A DNA stretch of 32,000 bases from assembly GCA_002794465.1 (NCBI GenBank), contig MTSL01000174.1:1-32000 (forward strand). The letters are read 5' to 3'. A program made the translations under genes and the position numbers. The notes beneath the pieces were generated by a model that ran no database searches, was not told the DNA's origin, and was given only the letters and a program-made list of their open reading frames with translations. Shown here piece after piece: positions 7,925-22,375 of the stretch; position 1 is the stretch's first letter, and every line of letters begins with the position of its first letter. This DNA is from Paramicrosporidium saccamoebae KSL3 (taxonomy: Eukaryota; Fungi; Cryptomycota).

Positions 7925-8134
7925 TATAAAATACTGTAATATTATGGGACTAACAGAGCTAATATGGCTACTAATTTTGTGGATTGACCCGGATTCACAT
8001 GCTTCCCAAGGGCTTTGATTAAGCAAAACTATAAGGACGAGTTTATAAAATAGTGTAATATTGTGGAACTAACAGAGCCAATGTGGCTATCGATTTTATA
8101 AATTGACGCGGGTTCACATGCGCTCTAGGGGCTT
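7925..8134. repeat. Diverged tandem duplication with a 119-bp period (7925..8015 vs 8044..8134) covering the ArgRS last codons and 3'UTR
   Basis: tataaaatactgtaatattatgggactaacagagctaatatggcta...attgacccggattcacatgcttcccaagggctt aligns with tataaaatagtgtaatattgtggaactaacagagccaatgtggcta...attgacgcgggttcacatgcgctctaggggctt. Confidence 0.9.
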
Positions 8135-9883
8135 CAGACCGAGAAGTACCAGGCCATTTCCAAGAGTATATCGTGCAGACACATACAATGCCATGCGTGC
8201 CTTGGCCAATTCCTCCTTCTGTCCCATGACCCATAATCGATCCAATGCCGTGGACACTACTCTACTCAGACCCATCAGATACGCAACAATATTGCAGGGC
8301 TCCATGCTGAGACGTGCCTCTTGCACAATCTCTGGATATTGGGCGATCATGAGAGCAAGATCGACAGCTTCTTTCTCATTAAGCAACGAATAATCTATGG
8401 GACCGGTAATATCGATGCCGCTCTTGCGCTGGATGGAGCAGAGACGGGCGTGAGCATATTGCAGGTACGGACCTGTGTCGCCCTCAAACTTGGTGACACG
8501 TTCTATTTTGAATTCATAGTCTTTAATTCGACGTGCAGACATGTCTTGGATGACAATAGCAGAGACGGCCAGCGTGTCGGCAACCTCTTCGGGGTTCTCA
8601 ATCTGAGCATACTTTTCAGGATTCTCCTTCATCACAGCGTGCATCACATCGCGAGCATCATCCAAAATGTCTTCCAGGAAGACAACCTGTCCCTTGCGAG
8701 TCTTCATGCCAAGCACCATACCAAAGTTAACATGAAGCACATTATCAGCCCATGGCTTTTCCATCATTTCAAGAATACGGATCAGCTGTTTCATGTGATG
8801 ATCCTGCTGCATCGCAATCACGTAAATGCTCTTGGCCAGGTCGTACGTCTCAAAACGATACTGAGCAGCGGCAATATCACGGGTCAAGTAGAGAGTGGTT
8901 CCGTCCTTCTTTACCACAATTGCCTTTCCCAAACCGTCAGCCTCCAAATCCACAATTTGGGCTCCCTGCGATTCTTGCACAATTTTCTTATCCTTCAGCT
9001 CTTGGATACGGTCCACCATCAGCTTTTCAAAATGTGACTCGCCAGAGTATACGTCAAATGAAACGTTCAGACGAGAGTAAATTTCTTTGTATTTGACAAT
9101 ACTCAGGTCACAGAAACGGCGCCACAGCTTTAGTGTCTCTTCATCGCCACCTTCCATCTTTTTAAAGTATGCACGTGCCTCGTCGTCAATAGCGGGATCT
9201 GTCTCAATTTCCTTATTGATACGTACATAGACGTCGAATAAATGTCGAATGGGCTCCTTTACCAGCTCTTCCTCTGATCCATAACGGAGAAAACCCACTG
9301 CAAGCAACCCATACTGTTTGCCCCAATCTCCGAGATAGTTCATGCTGATCGTCTCAAATCCATTGGCGCGGTAGAGATGCGTCAGGAAATTTCCAATGAC
9401 GGTGCTACGCAAATGACCCGCATGGAAAGGCTTTGCAATGTTTGGAGAACTGTATTCAACCAAAACTTTACGACCAGCTCCAATAGTGTTGCAGCCATAT
9501 TTTTCTTTCTTTGCCAATGCATCACTGATGACCTCTTTTAGGACGTGGGCTGTATCCACGGCAAAATTTAAAAAGGGACCGACAGCGGTTACAGCTTTGA
9601 ATATCTCATCACGAGGAAAACGCTTCGCAAGGTCCTGCGCCAATGCCGCCGGATTTCCAGGCAGTCTCAATTGCGGTAATGGGAGGGAAAACTGTCCATG
9701 CTCCTCTTTCTTGGGTTTCTCAAGCATCAGGAATATTTTATCGGCAGGCTGCTCTAACAACTTTGATAGACGGCCAGCAAGGTCCTGGCGAAGGCTATTC
9801 AGAATGTATGTCGTGGGCCATACTCTATTGTCTACAGTGACCATAGATACCTCGCTGGTAGGTGTGAGAATGTTTGATGTCAT
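8114..9883 (-). CDS. RRS1: Arginyl-tRNA synthetase (yeast RRS1/MSR1, RARS2-like type), 589 aa
   Basis: VEYSSPNIAKPFHAGHLRST (HIGH), NYLGDWGKQYG, GMKTRKG (KMSKS equivalent), FEGDTGPYLQYAHARL and the C-terminal LGLKPLERM. Confidence 0.97.
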   Translation of the reverse strand: MTSNILTPTSEVSMVTVDNRVWPTTYILNSLRQDLAGRLSKLLEQPADKIFLMLEKPKKEEHGQFSLPLPQLRLPGNPAALAQDLAKRFPRDEIFKAVTAVGPFLNFAVDTAHVLKEVISDALAKKEKYGCNTIGAGRKVLVEYSSPNIAKPFHAGHLRSTVIGNFLTHLYRANGFETISMNYLGDWGKQYGLLAVGFLRYGSEEELVKEPIRHLFDVYVRINKEIETDPAIDDEARAYFKKMEGGDEETLKLWRRFCDLSIVKYKEIYSRLNVSFDVYSGESHFEKLMVDRIQELKDKKIVQESQGAQIVDLEADGLGKAIVVKKDGTTLYLTRDIAAAQYRFETYDLAKSIYVIAMQQDHHMKQLIRILEMMEKPWADNVLHVNFGMVLGMKTRKGQVVFLEDILDDARDVMHAVMKENPEKYAQIENPEEVADTLAVSAIVIQDMSARRIKDYEFKIERVTKFEGDTGPYLQYAHARLCSIQRKSGIDITGPIDYSLLNEKEAVDLALMIAQYPEIVQEARLSMEPCNIVAYLMGLSRVVSTALDRLWVMGQKEELAKARMALYVSARYTLGNGLVLLGLKPLERM

Positions 9884-9932
9884 TAGTCGTCTTATTGGTC
9901 GCAGTAATACTGCCAGTCTTATGAAACGCAGA

Positions 9933-9957
9933 GTGAGTCACCCCGGCCATGACTCAT
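9933..9957. promoter_or_regulatory. Two Gcn4/AP-1-type sites (GTGAGTCAC at 9933..9941, ATGACTCAT at 9949..9957) upstream of ArgRS
   Basis: Both match TGA(C/G)TCA, and ATGACTCAT is the optimal Gcn4 site. They lie 50-74 bp upstream of an aminoacyl-tRNA synthetase ATG, a known Gcn4/CpcA target class in fungi. Confidence 0.6.
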
Positions 9958-9983
9958 AATTACGTGGACAAGTGATTTTTATT

Positions 9984-11354
9984 TTATGCTTGGAATTGGC
10001 CGTACTTGGACACTATTTTGTTGTATAGCATCGGGTCATTCCTTTGTAAAGAAGCCGGATCCTCGGAAAGGCATACGAACAAAGCCGTCGACCCGGCCCC
10101 AATGACCTGTAAAGCCACCATGGGAATTAGCATGCCTAGTAGGAACATGGACAAAGACAAAAGGACTGACAGCCCCATGGTCTCTCGATAAATCAAATAG
10201 GACAGTAAGAATGACACGAATCCACAACAAAATCCGATAGCTAGGCTCAGCATTGAGGTCGTGGTGCCTGTCAAATTATCATTCACAATGGCGTCGACCC
10301 CGTGCCTCTTGATCAGCTCCCACGTATCCCGCGATGCCTGCACAAACGACTTGCCGTATATGGCAATCTGTGTGTACGCATAGTAGTTGAAATATGCTAC
10401 CAGGCTCTCAACCCACTCGAGGATGCAGTCAACGACTGCGCCAGCGATACTGTTCTTTTCCGTTGCCGATTTGAGGACGATGCGGAGTAGTTGTATTAGG
10501 GCGACTATCAATGACCCCAAACAGACGCTACCAAAGGAGTATGTGACGGCTCTACTGAAAGCACCAGAAGTGGCCTTGTCGGCACGCTGTCCACGAGGAG
10601 TGAAGTAATGCGTCGCAAATACTCCAGCAATAGTGGTTTGAAGAACGTTGGCAAGGACTTGTGATGACCAGAGGAATGAGAAGAGCACAAAAAACAGCAG
10701 TGCTCCATGCAGTGCGTCGTCATATTCGTTGTATAAGGCCGCTGCGGCGCTGAAAGTGACTGAGAACCACGAGGCGTAAACAATCGAGACAACCAAGACT
10801 CCCGCTACCACTGTGTAGATGGAAGGGTACATCTCAATACAGTCCATGACCTGCTTCAGGATCAATGCCGAGAAGGCAAACCTGGATCGGACCCAGAAGT
10901 AGACAATTGTAAGCATGACTGCAATGAACAGAAACGTACCACAAGCCATATAGCCAAAGATATTTGGACGCAAAATCGCGGCTAGCACGCCAAAAAGCGC
11001 TGTCAGGACGATATTCGCAATCATTGAGACATGTATCATCATTTCTGCCCTTGTACGCAGCATAAGCATGCTAATGGCGGTGAGGAGACCAGAAGTAAAC
11101 ACCATTCCCACTAACTGTGCTATCAAAAATCCGAGTAAACCATCGGGCAAGTCGAGGTGCTTTTTAATGACAAATAGGTGCTTGTACGACGCACGAATGG
11201 CGTATAATGAGCATGTCGCAAACCATGCAAGGTGGAGGTAGAAGAGAATTGCACACCAAAGGTCTTGCCATTTTGGGTTGGTGGGGCTCACTTGCTTGGC
11301 GGGGACAGTCGCGGGGACAGGAGAAGGGACTCCAACTGTGGGAATGGAAGACAT
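9984..11354 (-). CDS. PNS1: Choline transporter-like (CTL/SLC44, Pns1 family) protein, paralogue 1
   Basis: PKWQDLWCAILF, RAVTYSFGSVCLGSLIVALI and YFNYYAYTQIAIYGKSF motifs with about 10 hydrophobic segments. First ATG is at 11354; the ORF track starts at a TTG. Confidence 0.9.
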   Translation of the reverse strand: MSSIPTVGVPSPVPATVPAKQVSPTNPKWQDLWCAILFYLHLAWFATCSLYAIRASYKHLFVIKKHLDLPDGLLGFLIAQLVGMVFTSGLLTAISMLMLRTRAEMMIHVSMIANIVLTALFGVLAAILRPNIFGYMACGTFLFIAVMLTIVYFWVRSRFAFSALILKQVMDCIEMYPSIYTVVAGVLVVSIVYASWFSVTFSAAAALYNEYDDALHGALLFFVLFSFLWSSQVLANVLQTTIAGVFATHYFTPRGQRADKATSGAFSRAVTYSFGSVCLGSLIVALIQLLRIVLKSATEKNSIAGAVVDCILEWVESLVAYFNYYAYTQIAIYGKSFVQASRDTWELIKRHGVDAIVNDNLTGTTTSMLSLAIGFCCGFVSFLLSYLIYRETMGLSVLLSLSMFLLGMLIPMVALQVIGAGSTALFVCLSEDPASLQRNDPMLYNKIVSKYGQFQA

Positions 11355-11728
11355 CGTGGCGGTACTTACCGACACCCTGGTTGGATCCTTTCTGTATGCC
11401 AGAGCTCTGGTTATTGGTTCGCCACGCGCCACGAACCAATCCGCTATGCACAAGACAATAATTTGACCGTTCTTTAACAAAGCTCTGGCGTAAGGACTCT
11501 TGTAAGCAAGTTATTGATAAGGTTGGCCCAGATAGCGATCCCACAACTCTGAGGATGGTGGCCTATGCGCAATAAATATGCCTTTAATAAAGCTCATTCG
11601 CTTATCAACAAACTCTTCTACCTACGTACAGAGACTACCATCGTAAACGCTTAACAAAAGAGTTATTTTTGTAGAGTTTCCACTACGCATCACATTAGTT
11701 TGGCAAGCTCATTTATTCTTGGGACTAT

Positions 11729-13105
11729 TTAGAACGTAATCATCGAGTATTTTTCCATGATTGCATTATACAGGTGCGGTTTGGATCGTTGCAATGCCTC
11801 TGGATCCTCGGCCAAACAGACAAAGGTTGTCGTAGCGCCAGCGCCGATAACTTCAAAGGCTACGGCTGGGATGATGATAGATAAAAGTCCAAAGACGACG
11901 GCGATCACGAGCGATTCATCCCATGGTTTGGCATATATCAGGGTAGAAATTATATATACCACTAACCCGCTGGCAATCCCGATGGTAAAGGAGGAAATTC
12001 CCAGACAGGTCCCTATCAGATCGTCGTTGACAATGGCATCTACACCTCGGCTCTTGACAAGATTCCAGGTATCCTTTGCGGCCTGAATGTATGGCTTACC
12101 ATAAATGGCAATCTGCGTGTAAGCAAAGTAATTGAAGTATTCCACCAAGCCTTGCAAAAGACCTAGGATGCAGTCGACCACGGCACCGGCAATACTGTCC
12201 CGATTTGTGGCCATTTGTAGTAGGAAACGGATCGTCTGGATAATTGCCACAATCAGGGATCCAAAGCAAATGCTACCAAACGAGTATGTGGTAGCTCTAC
12301 GGAGGGAGCTGGCAACGGGATTGATGATGGCTTGGCCAGTCCCGTGCAGAAAATAGTATGTTGCATAGACACCGGCAATACTAGTCTGCGCAGTGTTTGT
12401 AAGCACCTGTGAGGTCCAGAAGAGCGAAAATGCAGAGTAAATCATCATAGCCTGCGCATATGGGTCCTTGGTCCTATCATGGAGCACGCCGAGAGCCCCG
12501 AAGGTCGAGGCAAAGTATGCCATGTAGATGACAGAGATGACTACAGAGCTGCTGGTCACTAACAACATGCTGGGATAGGCCTTTAAACAATCCAGAACGG
12601 TCTGCAACAGTATTGCTGAGAAGGGGATGCGATTCCGAAATGCGAAATAAAACACAATGGTTATCACCGCCATGATGCTCAGAATCACACCTGGTAGGAT
12701 GGCACCTGCCACAAACGCCCATACCGCTATCCCCACACTCAGTACGCAATTCATGATGAATGCGGTGTGTAGCATCGTCTCTGGGGCGCTCTTCATGAAT
12801 CCCAAGGTCAACACGGTTAGTCCAACAGCAGTGGCAGCTGCACTTGCAAAGCTGATCAAAAAATAGCGCAGCATGTTGCCGTCTATTTCTATTCCGCCGG
12901 GTTTCTCAGTAATCGGGACATTGCGTACCTGGATGAATGCATAAACAGAGACGGCGATGAACCCAATAAAATGTGCATAGAACAAGACGGCTGCCCATAG
13001 GTCGCGCCATTGAGGTATGGGAAACATATTGTCATGCTTATTACCCGTCTGCTTCTTATCGAGGGGAGGCACAAAGCGCTCACTCGGAGAGGCAGCACCG
13101 TTCAT
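11729..13105 (-). CDS. PNS1: Choline transporter-like (CTL/SLC44, Pns1 family) protein, paralogue 2
   Basis: PQWRDLWAAVLF, RATTYSFGSICFGSLIVAII and YFNYFAYTQIAIYGKPY motifs; colinear with paralogue 1. First ATG at 13105. Confidence 0.9.
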   Translation of the reverse strand: MNGAASPSERFVPPLDKKQTGNKHDNMFPIPQWRDLWAAVLFYAHFIGFIAVSVYAFIQVRNVPITEKPGGIEIDGNMLRYFLISFASAAATAVGLTVLTLGFMKSAPETMLHTAFIMNCVLSVGIAVWAFVAGAILPGVILSIMAVITIVFYFAFRNRIPFSAILLQTVLDCLKAYPSMLLVTSSSVVISVIYMAYFASTFGALGVLHDRTKDPYAQAMMIYSAFSLFWTSQVLTNTAQTSIAGVYATYYFLHGTGQAIINPVASSLRRATTYSFGSICFGSLIVAIIQTIRFLLQMATNRDSIAGAVVDCILGLLQGLVEYFNYFAYTQIAIYGKPYIQAAKDTWNLVKSRGVDAIVNDDLIGTCLGISSFTIGIASGLVVYIISTLIYAKPWDESLVIAVVFGLLSIIIPAVAFEVIGAGATTTFVCLAEDPEALQRSKPHLYNAIMEKYSMITF

Positions 13106-13733
13106 CCTTGTCAACAACAGAAACTCCGAGCCAGGAGTTATGCAGACAAGGGAAGACGATGATTGGCTGCTGTTGAAACTCTTTGAATTTAGTTGGTCTC
13201 CACTATTCTGACTTCCAATTATATTCGCTATTTGGACACTAAGAAAGTGTATGAGAGGTTAATGAATGAGTCAGTTTTATTAAAGGCGCCTTTATAGGCC
13301 ACCATTCTCAATATTAGTAGATTGTCGTGATGCGTGGTGTGGCGTGAGAATTGTCGCATAGTTGGGAATGTGACGTAGAGGATTGATTGCCATGGTCTTT
13401 GGAATAATCGATGAAAGCTAATGAAAGTTATATCTTTACCAACGTGGGATTGCTACGTTATTTGTGAGACTATAATTAGGCTGTTGGATTAACAGTGAAC
13501 AAGTTCCCGCATGACTTGATCCGTGGTATTATCCCACACTACACGACACTATAGCATGGGTAAAGCGCCAATCTTTCTGCTTCCGTGTCTAGCCTCTGAC
13601 ACCTCGTTCCACATTTGCTCGCATAATAAACACCCAGCTAGTTATCTCGTTACTTTTTATATGCGGATGCTGCTTAAAGGGGTCTTTTAACTCCACGAAA
13701 TATAAGTATTTATCAAACAATTACCTGCATTGA

Positions 13734-16452
13734 ATGCCATGCATTTTAAAGGTTCATGTGGAGGCGGCTCGCGGCCTTCCCGCCATGGACAGTACATCTG
13801 AAGTGGCCGACGCCTATGTTGAGATTCGCTTTTCCGACTCTCTCCAGCGCACCTCTGTCTGTCGAAAGACGCTCAACCCGGTGTGGCGTGAAGATTTTCG
13901 TTTTGAAGTTCCTGACGATACGCTCCTGCAGGATGCGCCGCTGGAGCTAAAAGTGTTTGATTTTGATGCGATTACAGCGGACGATTCGGTGGGGATGGTG
14001 ACAGTAGACTTGAATCCGCTAGTTTCCTTGGAGGGCCCAAGCCAGATGGCGGGATGGTTCCCTATTTACGACACTATCCGAGGAGCGAGGGGGGAGTTGT
14101 GGGTACAAGTAAAGGTAGAATTCTTTGAAAATACCAATCCATTCAAAGAGTCTTCAGCTGGAATCCATTTGTTCAGTAGCTCCGGCATACCCGTACCTTA
14201 TACCGTACGGCAACACGCTATGATTTGATTTTGCTTAGAATGCAATAATTGTGGGACTGGTGGACGAGGTCATTACGGAAATTGATCCCGACTATCACTG
14301 GTCCGATTCATTCCGCACCTCCCGTTCCTCTAATGAAGCTTCGCAGCGCATTCTGAGTCAAATGAGCTGTCGATTGCGCCGTCAGATGGGCAGAAAAGCG
14401 TTGGAGATGGGGGGCAATTCCATTCTTGCCTACTCACAATGGATCGATATTGAGCCGTATTCTCAGACCATAACCTTTCGTGGACTGGGCACTGCTGCGA
14501 TTATGCAACAGTCCGAGCAAGACAGCGATTCCAAAGACGCGATGGATGAGGAGATTCCACTCAAGCTGCATTCAAAGGGGATCGAATTGGCAACCATTAG
14601 CAAACTTCCGCCTGGGTGCATTTCAGGGATAGGAGGCGTGGTATCTGCAAAGAGCGTGAAATTGTTGTCTGATGAGACCGATTACAGTGACGCTATTACC
14701 CGCGATCGGTGGTTGTCAGAACTGAGAGATGAGATTAGATTACATGCCCGCAATCTTGGCTGTAATATCGTCCTCGGCTATCGCGAAAACATTTCAATTC
14801 ACGAGGATTTGTACATTTTGGCTGCAGAGGGGACCGCATGTAGAATCCGGGGAAGAGAGATGCGTCGTCATCAGTTGCGTGATGATCGTTCCTCAGAGGA
14901 TGAGACTTTAGTTTCTGAAAAGGCCGAAAGAGTAAAACGTGTAGTCAAGCGACTCAAGGAGTGTGCCTTTTGTCATCTACCCAGACGAAAGGCAATACAG
15001 AGAACTGTCATGGCCAACTCTTCGACTTGTAATATTTGTAGAAAAATGCTAGTCCCAGAAATGTTGCTAGCCACCACTGAACTTACCTCGGATGTTGAAG
15101 TTTTTAGAGATCAGCGTCTGGTTGAAAGTTTTGTTTGTAGGCCACTAAGGAGGAAGAAAGACGGCGAGCCCACTGCCGCTACAGTCAGCTTGAATCTTCC
15201 ATTTGTAGAGTATGACTTGTACCGACAGTTGCAATTTAAGCTTCGCTACTATGGATTTAATGCTGTCTTTGGATTGAGGTATCAAATACTGGCGAGTGAC
15301 ACTATGATTGTCGCATTGGCCAGCGGAACAGGCGCATGTTTGGCTGCTCTCCCTGAGCCGCAGGCTTTACAAATATCCCGTAACATTGACATTCGCGATG
15401 CAGAAGACGAGCAAATCTTTAGCTTCCAGGAACGGGTGGCCAAGGCATCCTCTTCTACATACGACATTATCCATGAAATGTATTCTGACCGCTTCCAGTC
15501 GACATCTTCGGAGAGTTCATCAGATGCAGAGGACTCTCCCAGCTCTTCATCAAGCTCGAGTTCTTCGGAGGGTGATTTATCTGACGATCAGTCTGTTGTA
15601 CAAATTGATGATGAAGCTGACGAGGACTTGTTGTTGACTCTGGTTGAGCCTAACATTTCCACTGCCGTCTTGGCAGGAACATTGGATACCCAGCCATCAG
15701 TGGATCCATCCCTGTCACCCTGCTCCTCTCTCCACCAAATATCCCATTTTGTGTGTCAATTCCGTCGAGTCAATATTGCCAAAGAGAACCATCATCCAAA
15801 TTCAGCTCTGTCAACGCAATTCAGCCGCCACTATGAAGAAATGATTGCTCAGCTCGATGGTTTGTTTACGGGGACGCCACGGATCCACTGCATTCGACAT
15901 CAACTGAATTTGGTCCGCAGTGTTGAATTGCAAATTGTGACTATTGCCACGGTATTTGGAACGGTCAATGTCCCTGTGGCATCCAGCAAGGACTTGCTTG
16001 AGCCGATCACATTCGACTGGGCGGAACAGGATGTCATCTCCAGTGACTCGGACGACGAAGATGCGGTTCCCACCCGTCCTGGTACGGATACTTCTCCAAC
16101 TGTTGTCCCGCCCGCTTCAATTTCCTTCACGACCGGCACCCACACCCCCAGCTCTGTCCTCGTCGACAACTGCGGCACCATCGCCGTACAGCTGTTTAAA
16201 GAAATCTATTCGCACGAAAGCGCTGGCGGCTTCCCTGGGTTCGTAAACTCTACCATCTCTGATGCATTCTCCATCACAAGAGCATATGCCGCCTCGCTAG
16301 GCGGAAACGCAGTGACAGCGGTTGCATTTAAGCCAGCGGCATTTTATGAAAATTTCAAAAATCAGATGCATGTAGTAATGTCTTTGACAGCGGACGTGGT
16401 GGAGGTGGAACATGACCGAGAAACGGCTTGGTCCTTGTTACAATCAATTTAG
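13734..16452 (+). CDS. C2CD5: C2 domain-containing protein 5 (C2CD5/CDP138/KIAA0528) orthologue, about 894 aa, intron 14205..14238
   Basis: The N-terminal C2 domain MPCILKVHVEAARGLPAMD..ADAYVEIRF resembles human C2CD5. DPDYHWSDSFRTSRSSNEASQR and YbjQ-like repeats (LRDEIRLHARNLGCNIVLGYRE) follow. A 34-nt intron joins the two ORFs in frame. Confidence 0.85.
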
Positions 16453-20105: not shown

Positions 20106-22375
20106 ATGAGGCATGCATTGCGGAGCATAAAAAGGTCTCAATTTGTAGCCCAAAAGAGCACCTTGGCCTTAAATCCGGCATGGTCCGAGTTGGTGGCGAA
20201 AGAGTTAAAGGGAAAGAAGGCTGATGAGTTGGCCCGGAAGACGGCCGAGGTAATGGCGGCCATGTTGGTTAATTGATAAGGGAATCACCATCAAGCCACT
20301 CTACACAAAGGACGACACTAAGAAGATAGCCGATGAGCTTCCTGGACAGTTCCCGTACACCCGCGGCCCATATGCTTCCATGTACACCCACCGTCCATGG
20401 ACCATCCGTCAATATGCGGGGTTCAGCACGGTGGAGGAAAGCAATGCATTCTATAAGAAGAATCTGGCAGCCGGGCAGCAGGGACTGAGTGTGGCTTTTG
20501 ATCTTGCCACTCATCGGGGCTACGACTCGGACCATCCTCGTGTGACTGGTGATGTAGGGATGGCGGGGGTTGCAATTGACAGTATCGAAGACATGAAGAT
20601 CCTCTTTGACGGAATCCCGTTGGATCGAATGTCTGTGTCAATGACAATGAACGGAGCTGTGCTGCCCGTAATGGCCATGTACATTGGAGCCGCCATCGAA
20701 CAGGGAGTAAAGACGGAACAACTGGCCGGCACCATACAAAACGACATTCTGAAGGAATTCATGGTCCGAAACACCTTTATCTATCCTCCCGAGCCGTCGA
20801 TGCGCATCATTTCCGATGTCTTTTCCTACACGGCCAAGGTATGGCGAGACTTTATGCTCATGCCGCGTAGAATATGCCGAAATTCCATTCCATCTCCATC
20901 TCAGGCTATCATATGCAGGAAGCTGGCGCCGATGTTGTTCTTGAACTCGGATTCACCATTGCCAATGGTTTAGAGTACATTCGGACCGGTTTGGCAGCGG
21001 GTCTGGCTGTGGATGAATTTGCTCCACGTCTGTCATTCTTTTGGGGGATTGGCATGAATTTCTACATGGAAATTGCCAAAATGCGGGCAGCACGCAAATT
21101 ATGGGCAGAGTTGGTGAAGGAAAAGTTCAAGCCGAAGAATGCAAAGTCGGTACAGCTTCGGACCCATTGTCAAACGTCGGGATGGTCGCTGACTGAAAAG
21201 GATCCATACAACAATGTGATTCGAACAACAATCGAGGCCATGGCAGCCGTGTTTGGTGGAACACAGAGTCTTCATACTAATTCGCTCGACGAAGCTGTGG
21301 CTCTGCCTACCGAGTTTAGTGCCCGGATTGCCCGAAACACCCAGCTGGTTTTACAATGTGAGACGGGAATCACTCATGCAGTTGATCCCTGGGGTGGGTC
21401 GTACTTGATCGAGTCGCTGACTAAGGACGTCTATGATGCAGCTAAAGCCTTGATTGAGGAAGTGGAGGCGATGGGAGGAATGGCCAAGGCAGTCGCATCG
21501 GGGATGCCCAAACTTCGGATCGAAGAGGCAGCAACACGGAGACAGGCCTTGATAGACTCTGGACAAGAAGTCATTGTAGGTGTGAACCGATACCAATCTG
21601 ACAGCAAGGACAATGTCCAAGTACGGCCATTTCCGTTCTCACAATGTAGGTGCTGTCGGTCGATAATGCCACAGTTTTGAAGAAACAGGCAGCAAGACTG
21701 AAAAAGATAAAATCTTCTCGAGACGAAAAGGCGACTGCAAAATGTCTTGCTGCTCTGACAAATGCGGCAAAGACAGGAAAGGGAAATCTATTGGAATTGT
21801 CTGTAAATGCTGCATTGGCCCGGTGTACTTTGGGCGAAATATCCAACGCTCTTGAAGATGTGTGGGGTCGACATCAAGCAAGCAGCACTGTCGTCTCTGG
21901 TGCCTACAAGTCGGCCTATGGCGATTCCGCCGCCATTGATGCCACGATTCGTCGTGCTAGCGAGTTTATGGAACGCCATGGTCGTCGTCCTCGCATTCTC
22001 GTTGCAAAACTGGGCCAGGATGGCCATGATCGCGGCGCCAAGGTAATTGCCAGCAGTTTTGCCGATTTGGGCTTTGATGTGGATATCGGCCCTCTTTTCC
22101 AGACTCCCGAAGAGGTATTGCGACAGGCATTGGACTCGGATGTACATGTGATTGGGGTGAGCACATTAGCAGCAGCGCATCGGACGCTTGTTCCCGAGCT
22201 CATCCGACTGCTAAAAAAGAACAAAGCAGGCCATATAGCAGTAATCTGCGGCGGTGTCATTCCGGAAAAGGACTACAAGGATCTGTACAACCAAGGCGTC
22301 GCTGCCATATTTGGGCCCGGCACGCCCATTCCCGAATCGGCCCTCAAGATTATTGATCTCATTGATAATTGTTGA
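20106..22375 (+). CDS. MUT: Adenosylcobalamin-dependent methylmalonyl-CoA mutase, mitochondrial, about 725 aa; introns 20250..20280, 20839..20870, 21621..21649
   Basis: [27 protein letters not shown] and the cobalamin-binding DxHxxG motif ([11 protein letters not shown]). The N-terminus [13 protein letters not shown] is presequence-like. The spliced length of 2178 nt is divisible by 3. Confidence 0.97.

Follow-up and report, generated by a model that had tools for sequence, protein, structure and literature searches.

The arginyl-tRNA synthetase (ArgRS) gene in the window, by which we mean the whole 32,000-nt stretch of DNA that was analysed, probably gives two proteins from one mRNA, one of them begun at a near-cognate CUG codon and carrying a mitochondrial presequence. 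The features concerned are collected in Table 1. In the proposed scheme, a minority of scanning ribosomes would start at a CUG, most likely that at 9916-9914 (AGACUGG) and less likely that at 9931-9929, and about 11-16 residues, (M)AVLLRPIRRL or (M)RFIRLAVLLRPIRRL, would be added to the enzyme. The added stretch would act as a short, Arg-rich, acid-free amphipathic mitochondrial presequence, and the extended ArgRS would be imported to the matrix and serve in charging for the 23 mtDNA-encoded tRNAs. Most ribosomes would pass on to the AUG at 9883 by leaky scanning and make the cytosolic enzyme. We infer that the transcript covers the CUG, that import of the product takes place and that no further ArgRS gene exists. 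A second P. saccamoebae ArgRS does not occur among the best 120 homology matches listed, all of which are above 50% identity, a range in which a divergent copy would not show. That the extension is a presequence read from a near-cognate codon had been put forward in the first-pass annotation of the window, and the proposal is supported by comparative evidence and by a precedent for the same enzyme in fungi (PMC7049704).

Table 1. Features of the ArgRS locus, short introns elsewhere in the window, and extensions read upstream of the ArgRS AUG in related loci
Feature	Position	Strand	Sequence and remarks
ArgRS coding sequence, 589 aa plus stop	8114..9883	-	ATG 9883-9881, stop 8116-8114; proposed cytosolic isoform
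AUG-less in-frame extension, 18 codons	9884..9937	-	LTLRFIRLAVLLRPIRRL; proposed mitochondrial presequence, whole or 3' part
CTG codon -7	9902..9904	-	T at -3, poor context; unlikely start
CTG codon -11	9914..9916	-	AGA CTG G (A at -3, G at +4); favoured candidate start, (M)AVLLRPIRRL-MTSN...
CTG codon -16	9929..9931	-	ACT CTG C (A at -3, C at +4); alternative candidate start, (M)RFIRLAVLLRPIRRL-M...
Candidate 32-nt intron	9910..9941	-	GTGACT...TTCAT...CAG; disfavoured
Proximal TGA(C/G)TCA (Gcn4/AP-1-type) site	9934..9940	.	TGACTCA
In-frame TGA closing the extension	9938..9940	-	first triplet of the proximal TGACTCA site
Distal palindromic site (Gcn4-optimal type)	9949..9957	.	ATGAGTCAT; TGA(C/G)TCA at 9956-9950
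End of upstream choline-transporter-like gene	9978..9986	-	TAA 9986-9984, then AATAAA 9983-9978 directly
Exo84 intron	4993-4959	-	35 nt; 5' GTATCG, 3' TAG
C2CD5-like intron	14205-14238		34 nt; 5' GTACGG, 3' TAG
MUT intron	20250-20280		31 nt; 5' GTAATG, 3' AAG
MUT intron	20839-20870		32 nt; 5' GTATGG, 3' TAG
MUT intron	21621-21649		29 nt; 5' GTACGG, 3' TAG
L002 extension			...VTNILSRVLSK-M
L004 extension			LMIGWFTNRGRALAFRILTLCKRAGSRLAST-M
L006 extension			...KTRLFKVRLGAFLDRVTR-M
L007 extension			VIPGQPNKIRHLKTSIRSAFSLGR-M
L009 extension			PFTILSRIGAILSKLSSRPPSKHTRALSS-M
L010 extension			...RKIIRRLSSSLLVQVKRNLSRAINI-M
L090 extension			LITGTILSRITRRLL-M
L091 extension			...IVKIFLSRLRRGI-M
L092 extension			...FRIFHHFRKRLL-M
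L093 extension			...STIFSRLIRRGLT-M

Does this organism need an ArgRS in its mitochondria? The source contig, MTSL01000174.1 of assembly GCA_002794465.1, belongs to Paramicrosporidium saccamoebae, an intranuclear rozellomycotan (Rozellomycota) parasite of amoebae with a genome of 7.28 Mb and 3750 protein models. Its mtDNA is 25.4 kb long, with 23 tRNAs and a full respiratory chain (OXPHOS). Since the mtDNA encodes these tRNAs and respiration is full, ArgRS activity is needed in the matrix. The retention of full respiration is unusual for the clade of P. saccamoebae. The window also holds a B12-dependent methylmalonyl-CoA mutase (MUT) gene (20106-22375, plus strand) with three short introns and an AUG-initiated presequence, and this presequence was used as an in-genome reference for matrix presequences.

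What kind of enzyme does the gene encode? Pfam gives Arg_tRNA_synt_N (E = 6e-12), tRNA-synt_1d (E = 1e-106) and DALR_1 (E = 3e-25) on the protein, and the HAGH motif is seen in the ORF. The best solved structure is the yeast cytoplasmic ArgRS 1BS2 (E = 3e-184); the matches to the ArgRS of E. coli (E = 5e-69) and to the human cytoplasmic enzyme (E = 1e-59) are far weaker, that of E. coli being the closer of the two. By these matches the gene is the orthologue of yeast cytoplasmic ArgRS and codes for a fungal (yeast RRS1-type) class I arginyl-tRNA synthetase. Query residues 17-589 align with chain residues 21-607 of 1BS2, and therefore the N-terminus from the AUG at 9883 has the normal cytosolic length. 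The C at position -3 of this AUG is a weak context for a main start, which is evidence neither way. The yeast cytoplasmic ArgRS is stated to be of mitochondrial origin (PMC4615739), and this fits the earlier remark on the window that the enzyme is of the type serving mitochondria in animals.

The gene is closely packed with its neighbours. The spacer between the stop codon of the choline-transporter-like gene and the ArgRS AUG is 100 nt in total, and AATAAA abuts the upstream stop, so that these 100 nt accommodate the 3' end formation of one gene as well as the promoter, the leader and the putative presequence of the next. Upstream of ArgRS, on the minus strand, come two choline-transporter-like (PF04515) genes in tandem (9984-11480 and 11729-13117), and most metagenomic relatives have retained the gene order choline transporter, ArgRS, F-actin capping beta, Exo84.

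The extension LTLRFIRLAVLLRPIRRL holds five Arg, no Asp or Glu and no ATG, and it runs straight into the main ORF; the 66 nt upstream of 9883 contain no ATG in any frame. The first-pass annotation had described 18 open in-frame codons upstream of the ATG at 9883, having five Arg and neither acidic residues nor an ATG, and had placed in-frame CTGs at 9931 (A at -3), 9916 and 9904. A check against the sequence bore out every element of this description and located all three codons where they had been placed. Is such a frame exceptional? In the window alone, 18 open codons are at chance level, as 10/22 control frames taken from the orthologous loci likewise stay open over 15 codons or more. On a crude measure of helical moment, the window forms with the extension reach 0.86 and the MUT presequence 0.89, compared with 0.32 for the AUG form, and the relatives' extensions behave like that of the window in amphipathic moment. 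The N-terminus of the AUG form is acidic and non-amphipathic. RNA folding of 9945..9850 gave no structure beyond shuffles (z = -0.21), and a start-enhancing hairpin is therefore without support. A scan for sigma-70 promoters and terminators, which is not applicable to a eukaryote, gave nothing relevant.

The comparison with related loci is more telling. Ten loci (L002/L003, L004, L005, L006, L007/L008, L009, L090, L091, L092 and L093) were collected through their encoded ArgRS proteins, which are 61-76% identical, and an eleventh, L010 (57% identical), came from a metagenome scan with the ArgRS alignment. The contigs found by that scan were mostly distant or bacterial-looking loci at 35-39% identity, the useful ones being L010 and some AUG-extended fungal loci only. 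In all 11 further loci (ArgRS 57-76% identical, most with the same neighbours), the frame upstream of the matching AUG is open for 15-91 codons. The peptides read from it are basic, hydroxylated and acid-poor, and they have in common a motif I-[LF]-S-R-x-x-R-R with synonymous codon changes. Examples are ILSRITRRLL-M, IFSRLIRRGLT-M, IFLSRLRRGI-M and ILSRVLSK-M, and further ones are KIRHLKTSIRSAFSLGR-M, ILSRIGAILSKLSSRPPSKHTRALSS-M and RKIIRRLSSSLLVQVKRNLSRAINI-M. The end of the window extension, ...AVLLRPIRRL-M (LLRPIRRL-M), matches the pattern L-x-R-x-x-R-R-L.

Over the last 15 codons of the 11 loci, frame 0 has 38 K/R, 2 D/E and no stop in 165 codons, compared with 34 K/R, 35 D/E and 15 stops in 330 codons for the other two frames in the same span (Fisher P = 6e-6); the median open length is 30 codons in frame 0 and 12 in the other frames (P = 9e-4), and these P values overstate independence as the loci are phylogenetically related, the extension DNA being, however, too diverged to align. 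The Ser codons of the motif are TCG, TCA or AGC and its Arg codons CGC, CGT, CGG or CGA, and the 3-nt indel between L090 and L093 amounts to one whole codon. Such synonymous changes and a whole-codon indel mean that conservation is at the amino-acid level and not at the DNA level. As judged from these sequences, the pattern across the 11-12 orthologous loci is beyond chance. Conservation in relatives had been named in the first-pass annotation as a check on its proposal, and it is found as an open, basic, acid-poor frame with a common motif in 11 loci.

Two other observations came from the same loci. Met14 of ArgRS (9842-9844), the second in-frame Met, is semi-conserved in L002, L004, L006, L007, L090 and L010; the Met14-type residue sits 3-5 residues ahead of a conserved (L/V)D(S/N)R(V/I)WPT motif and could be a third start site. 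In L006 and L007, short uORFs (ATG ATT CAT CTA ATG GTG TGA; ATG ATG GAC ... TGG TGA) lie at about -111 to -73 from the ArgRS AUG and end exactly at the in-frame stop preceding the extension, which could be a reinitiation arrangement.

There is a further question, at which codon would the extended form begin? No in-frame ATG is present in 8/12 extensions (the window, L006, L007, L009, L010, L090, L091 and L092). In the 60 nt before the AUG, ATG is absent from every frame in the 11 loci tested, where about 6 out-of-frame ones are expected (P about 0.003). This absence is what leaky scanning requires, and the depletion suggests indirectly that the stretch is scanned. Meanwhile, an in-frame AUU or AUC with A at -3 occurs in 9/12 loci, compared with 4/12 and 0/12 in the other frames. 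It lies at codons -8 to -16 (-26 in L009) in L002, L004, L007, L009, L090, L091, L092 and L093, and L010 also has an A(-3)-AUU. The contexts seen are ACG ATT, AAC ATT, ACC ATT, AAA ATC, AGA ATT and AAA ATT. In several loci the AUU or AUC is the first codon of the conserved motif, and a start there would give M-L-S-R. An Arg/Ser-rich, acid-free, amphipathic N-terminus that starts with M-L-S-R is a classic matrix presequence.

The window lacks an in-frame AUU of the kind seen in its relatives; its sole A(-3)-ATT lies in another frame, and the peptide read from it is not presequence-like. We infer that the CTG at 9916 is the best candidate start, ahead of the CTG at 9931 as second choice, because its A-3/G+4 flanks are the best possible and its position is equivalent to that of the AUU of the relatives. 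The CTG at 9931 sits 3 nt after the conserved TGACTCA element, and a start there therefore needs a transcription start inside or upstream of the element. Of the earlier proposal of CTG candidates, the idea of a near-cognate start thus stands, while its listing of 9931 with 9916 gives way to a preference for 9916, which has the better flanks and the AUU-equivalent position.

This element and its distal partner bear on where transcription begins. TGA(C/G)TCA is present within 150 nt upstream in 6/12 orthologous loci (the window, L002, L004, L007, L090 and L093), whereas 55.6 kb of other sequence have 3 sites (P = 2e-10). Over the whole window TGASTCA is not enriched (5 found, 5.3 expected), and it is significant only as clustering and conservation at the ArgRS promoter. 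Gcn4/AP-1-type elements are known in the promoters of yeast aminoacyl-tRNA synthetase (aaRS) genes, and TGA(C/G)TCA here looks like a conserved promoter element of this type. The distal site holds two out-of-frame ATGs, at 9957 and 9950, which suggest that most transcripts would start downstream of 9948. If transcription starts downstream of TGASTCA, the CTG at 9931 is out and the leader before the CTG at 9916 is at most about 17 nt. In five loci (L001, L002, L004, L007 and L090), the TGA of the proximal site is also the in-frame stop of the extension.

Could the 54 nt be a promoter or 5' leader only, which is not translated, with the mitochondrial ArgRS coming from a separate gene or from an AUG-initiated protein? 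The intergenic distance is just 100 nt, and within it lie two conserved TGASTCA sites, typical of amino-acid-controlled gene promoters; open frames are also common here, at least 15 codons being open in 10/22 control frames. That the spacer also holds the upstream AATAAA and the two TGASTCA sites, and that the window is without the AUU of its relatives, are points against the CUG-started presequence. However, an untranslated leader fails to explain why a frame that is open, basic, acid-free and marked by a common motif recurs specifically in 12 lineages whose ArgRS proteins are 57-76% identical. It leaves the organism with an AUG form that is acidic and non-amphipathic at its N-terminus, and in Cryptococcus and Candida this enzyme does start at a near-cognate codon. 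We consider it unlikely that the 54 nt have a leader function only. Suppose then that the extension is translated, but for another role, for example regulation of main-ORF translation or some other localisation. Import is indeed argued from composition and amphipathicity only. Yet Arg/Ser-rich, acid-free, amphipathic M-L-S-R starts are classic matrix presequences, the organism must provide ArgRS to its mitochondria, and the homologous extensions of other fungi have been predicted to be, or classed as, mitochondrial, so that a different role seems very improbable.

Another route to a mitochondrial form would begin at the AUG at 9957-9955, with a 32-nt intron (9941..9910) spliced out to give MSHGR/VLLRPIRRL-MTSN.... 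The candidate has GT...AG ends and a length in the range of the local introns (29-35 nt), a TTCAT branch-like element lies 12 nt from its 3' end, the frame is restored exactly, and the product is presequence-like with a moment of 1.01. Its details are less convincing, for position +3 is G, position +6 is T and the 3' end is CAG, whereas the five introns in the window have GTA, G at +6 and TAG or AAG. Moreover, GTGACTCA is the conserved TGASTCA element and no intron start in the relatives, a route through an upstream ATG and an intron is absent from L009, L010, L090, L091 and L092, and the transcript must begin no more than 27 nt from where the upstream gene stops. Splicing of this kind is therefore given little credence, and the near-cognate CUG remains the preferred start of the mitochondrial form. 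The introns of the window are of interest in themselves. They show that spliceosomal introns of P. saccamoebae are ultra-short: those in the window (5/5) measure 29-35 nt, begin with GTAnnG and end in TAG or AAG. Introns are not mentioned in the main text of the eLife genome paper.

How does the proposed CUG start compare with known systems? In Cryptococcus, the mitochondrial isoform of the single-copy ArgRS starts at an AUU (cccaccAUU), as seen by ribosome profiling (Wallace et al. 2020, PMC7049704). The enzyme (CNAG_03457 / CNG01310) is, like that of the window, orthologous to the YDR341C type, and it too has an upstream near-cognate codon in good context with the cytosolic AUG downstream; its AUU resembles the A(-3)-AUU of the window's relatives. 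The Cryptococcus case has been profiled and its MitoFates score is above 0.95, whereas the window would use CUG for a much shorter extension of 11-16 aa in a 100-nt spacer. The table of that study puts the ArgRS of C. neoformans, C. deneoformans and C. albicans in the DualNCC (near-cognate dual) class and that of N. crassa in the DualAUG class (PMC7049704). Candida albicans (C1_01530C_A, DualNCC by table entry) and N. crassa (NCU08195, DualAUG) each supply both compartments from a single ArgRS gene by means of an N-terminal extension. N. crassa, unlike the window, has an upstream AUG and a long presequence, as do most fungal metagenome loci.

In S. cerevisiae, ALA1 (ACG ACG) and GRS1 (UUG) make non-AUG mitochondrial isoforms by leaky scanning (cited in PMC7049704), which is like the present proposal. 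The synthetases are other ones, however, with extensions of about 23-25 residues. The same yeast has RRS1 (YDR341C) and MSR1 (YHR091C) of the ArgRS family, and this pair is a product of the whole-genome duplication (PMC7049704). RRS1 and the window protein can be aligned over their full length. Yeast thus has two genes for two jobs after duplication, while the window would have the pre-duplication arrangement of one gene with an extension. Among other fungal ArgRS loci from metagenomes, an upstream AUG is followed by an MTS-like stretch and then an internal Met, and the R. irregularis (Rhizophagus) protein P0061 likewise has an AUG-initiated MTS-like extension and then an internal Met.

The mechanism is thus already known and is ordinary for fungal aaRS, and the known picture of their dual targeting is unchanged by the window. 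What is new is the deep-branching lineage, where it was previously unnoted. The GenBank-style 589-aa model probably omits the isoform meant for the mitochondria of this reduced parasite, and where presequences in compact genomes start at non-AUG codons, gene callers will miss members of the mitochondrial proteome. Then why is a near-cognate codon kept, and not a weak AUG? The 8/12 lineages with an AUG-less presequence offer a natural series for this question. One speculative scenario is that a near-cognate start for the ArgRS presequence is an old state across the Rozellomycota-like clade, with AUU swapped for CUG in Paramicrosporidium, that it is perhaps shared by descent with Dikarya (Cryptococcus, Candida), and that it is physically coupled to the conserved Gcn4-type element, the TGA of which ends the frame a little upstream. 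We regard this scenario as distinctly doubtful; if it were true, amino-acid starvation would shift both transcription and start-codon stringency, and hence the ratio of mitochondrial to cytosolic ArgRS.

Extensions of a different kind were also seen at the N-terminus of fungal ArgRS. In the proteins P0064, P0086, P0111 and P0120 (Mucor, Dissophora, Rhizophlyctis and Polychytrium), an N-terminal domain of 150-200 aa is present that is not presequence-like. The domain occurs in Mucorales, Mortierellales and chytrids, whereas the Rozellomycota-like clade, Umbelopsis, Basidiobolus and Kickxellales lack it.
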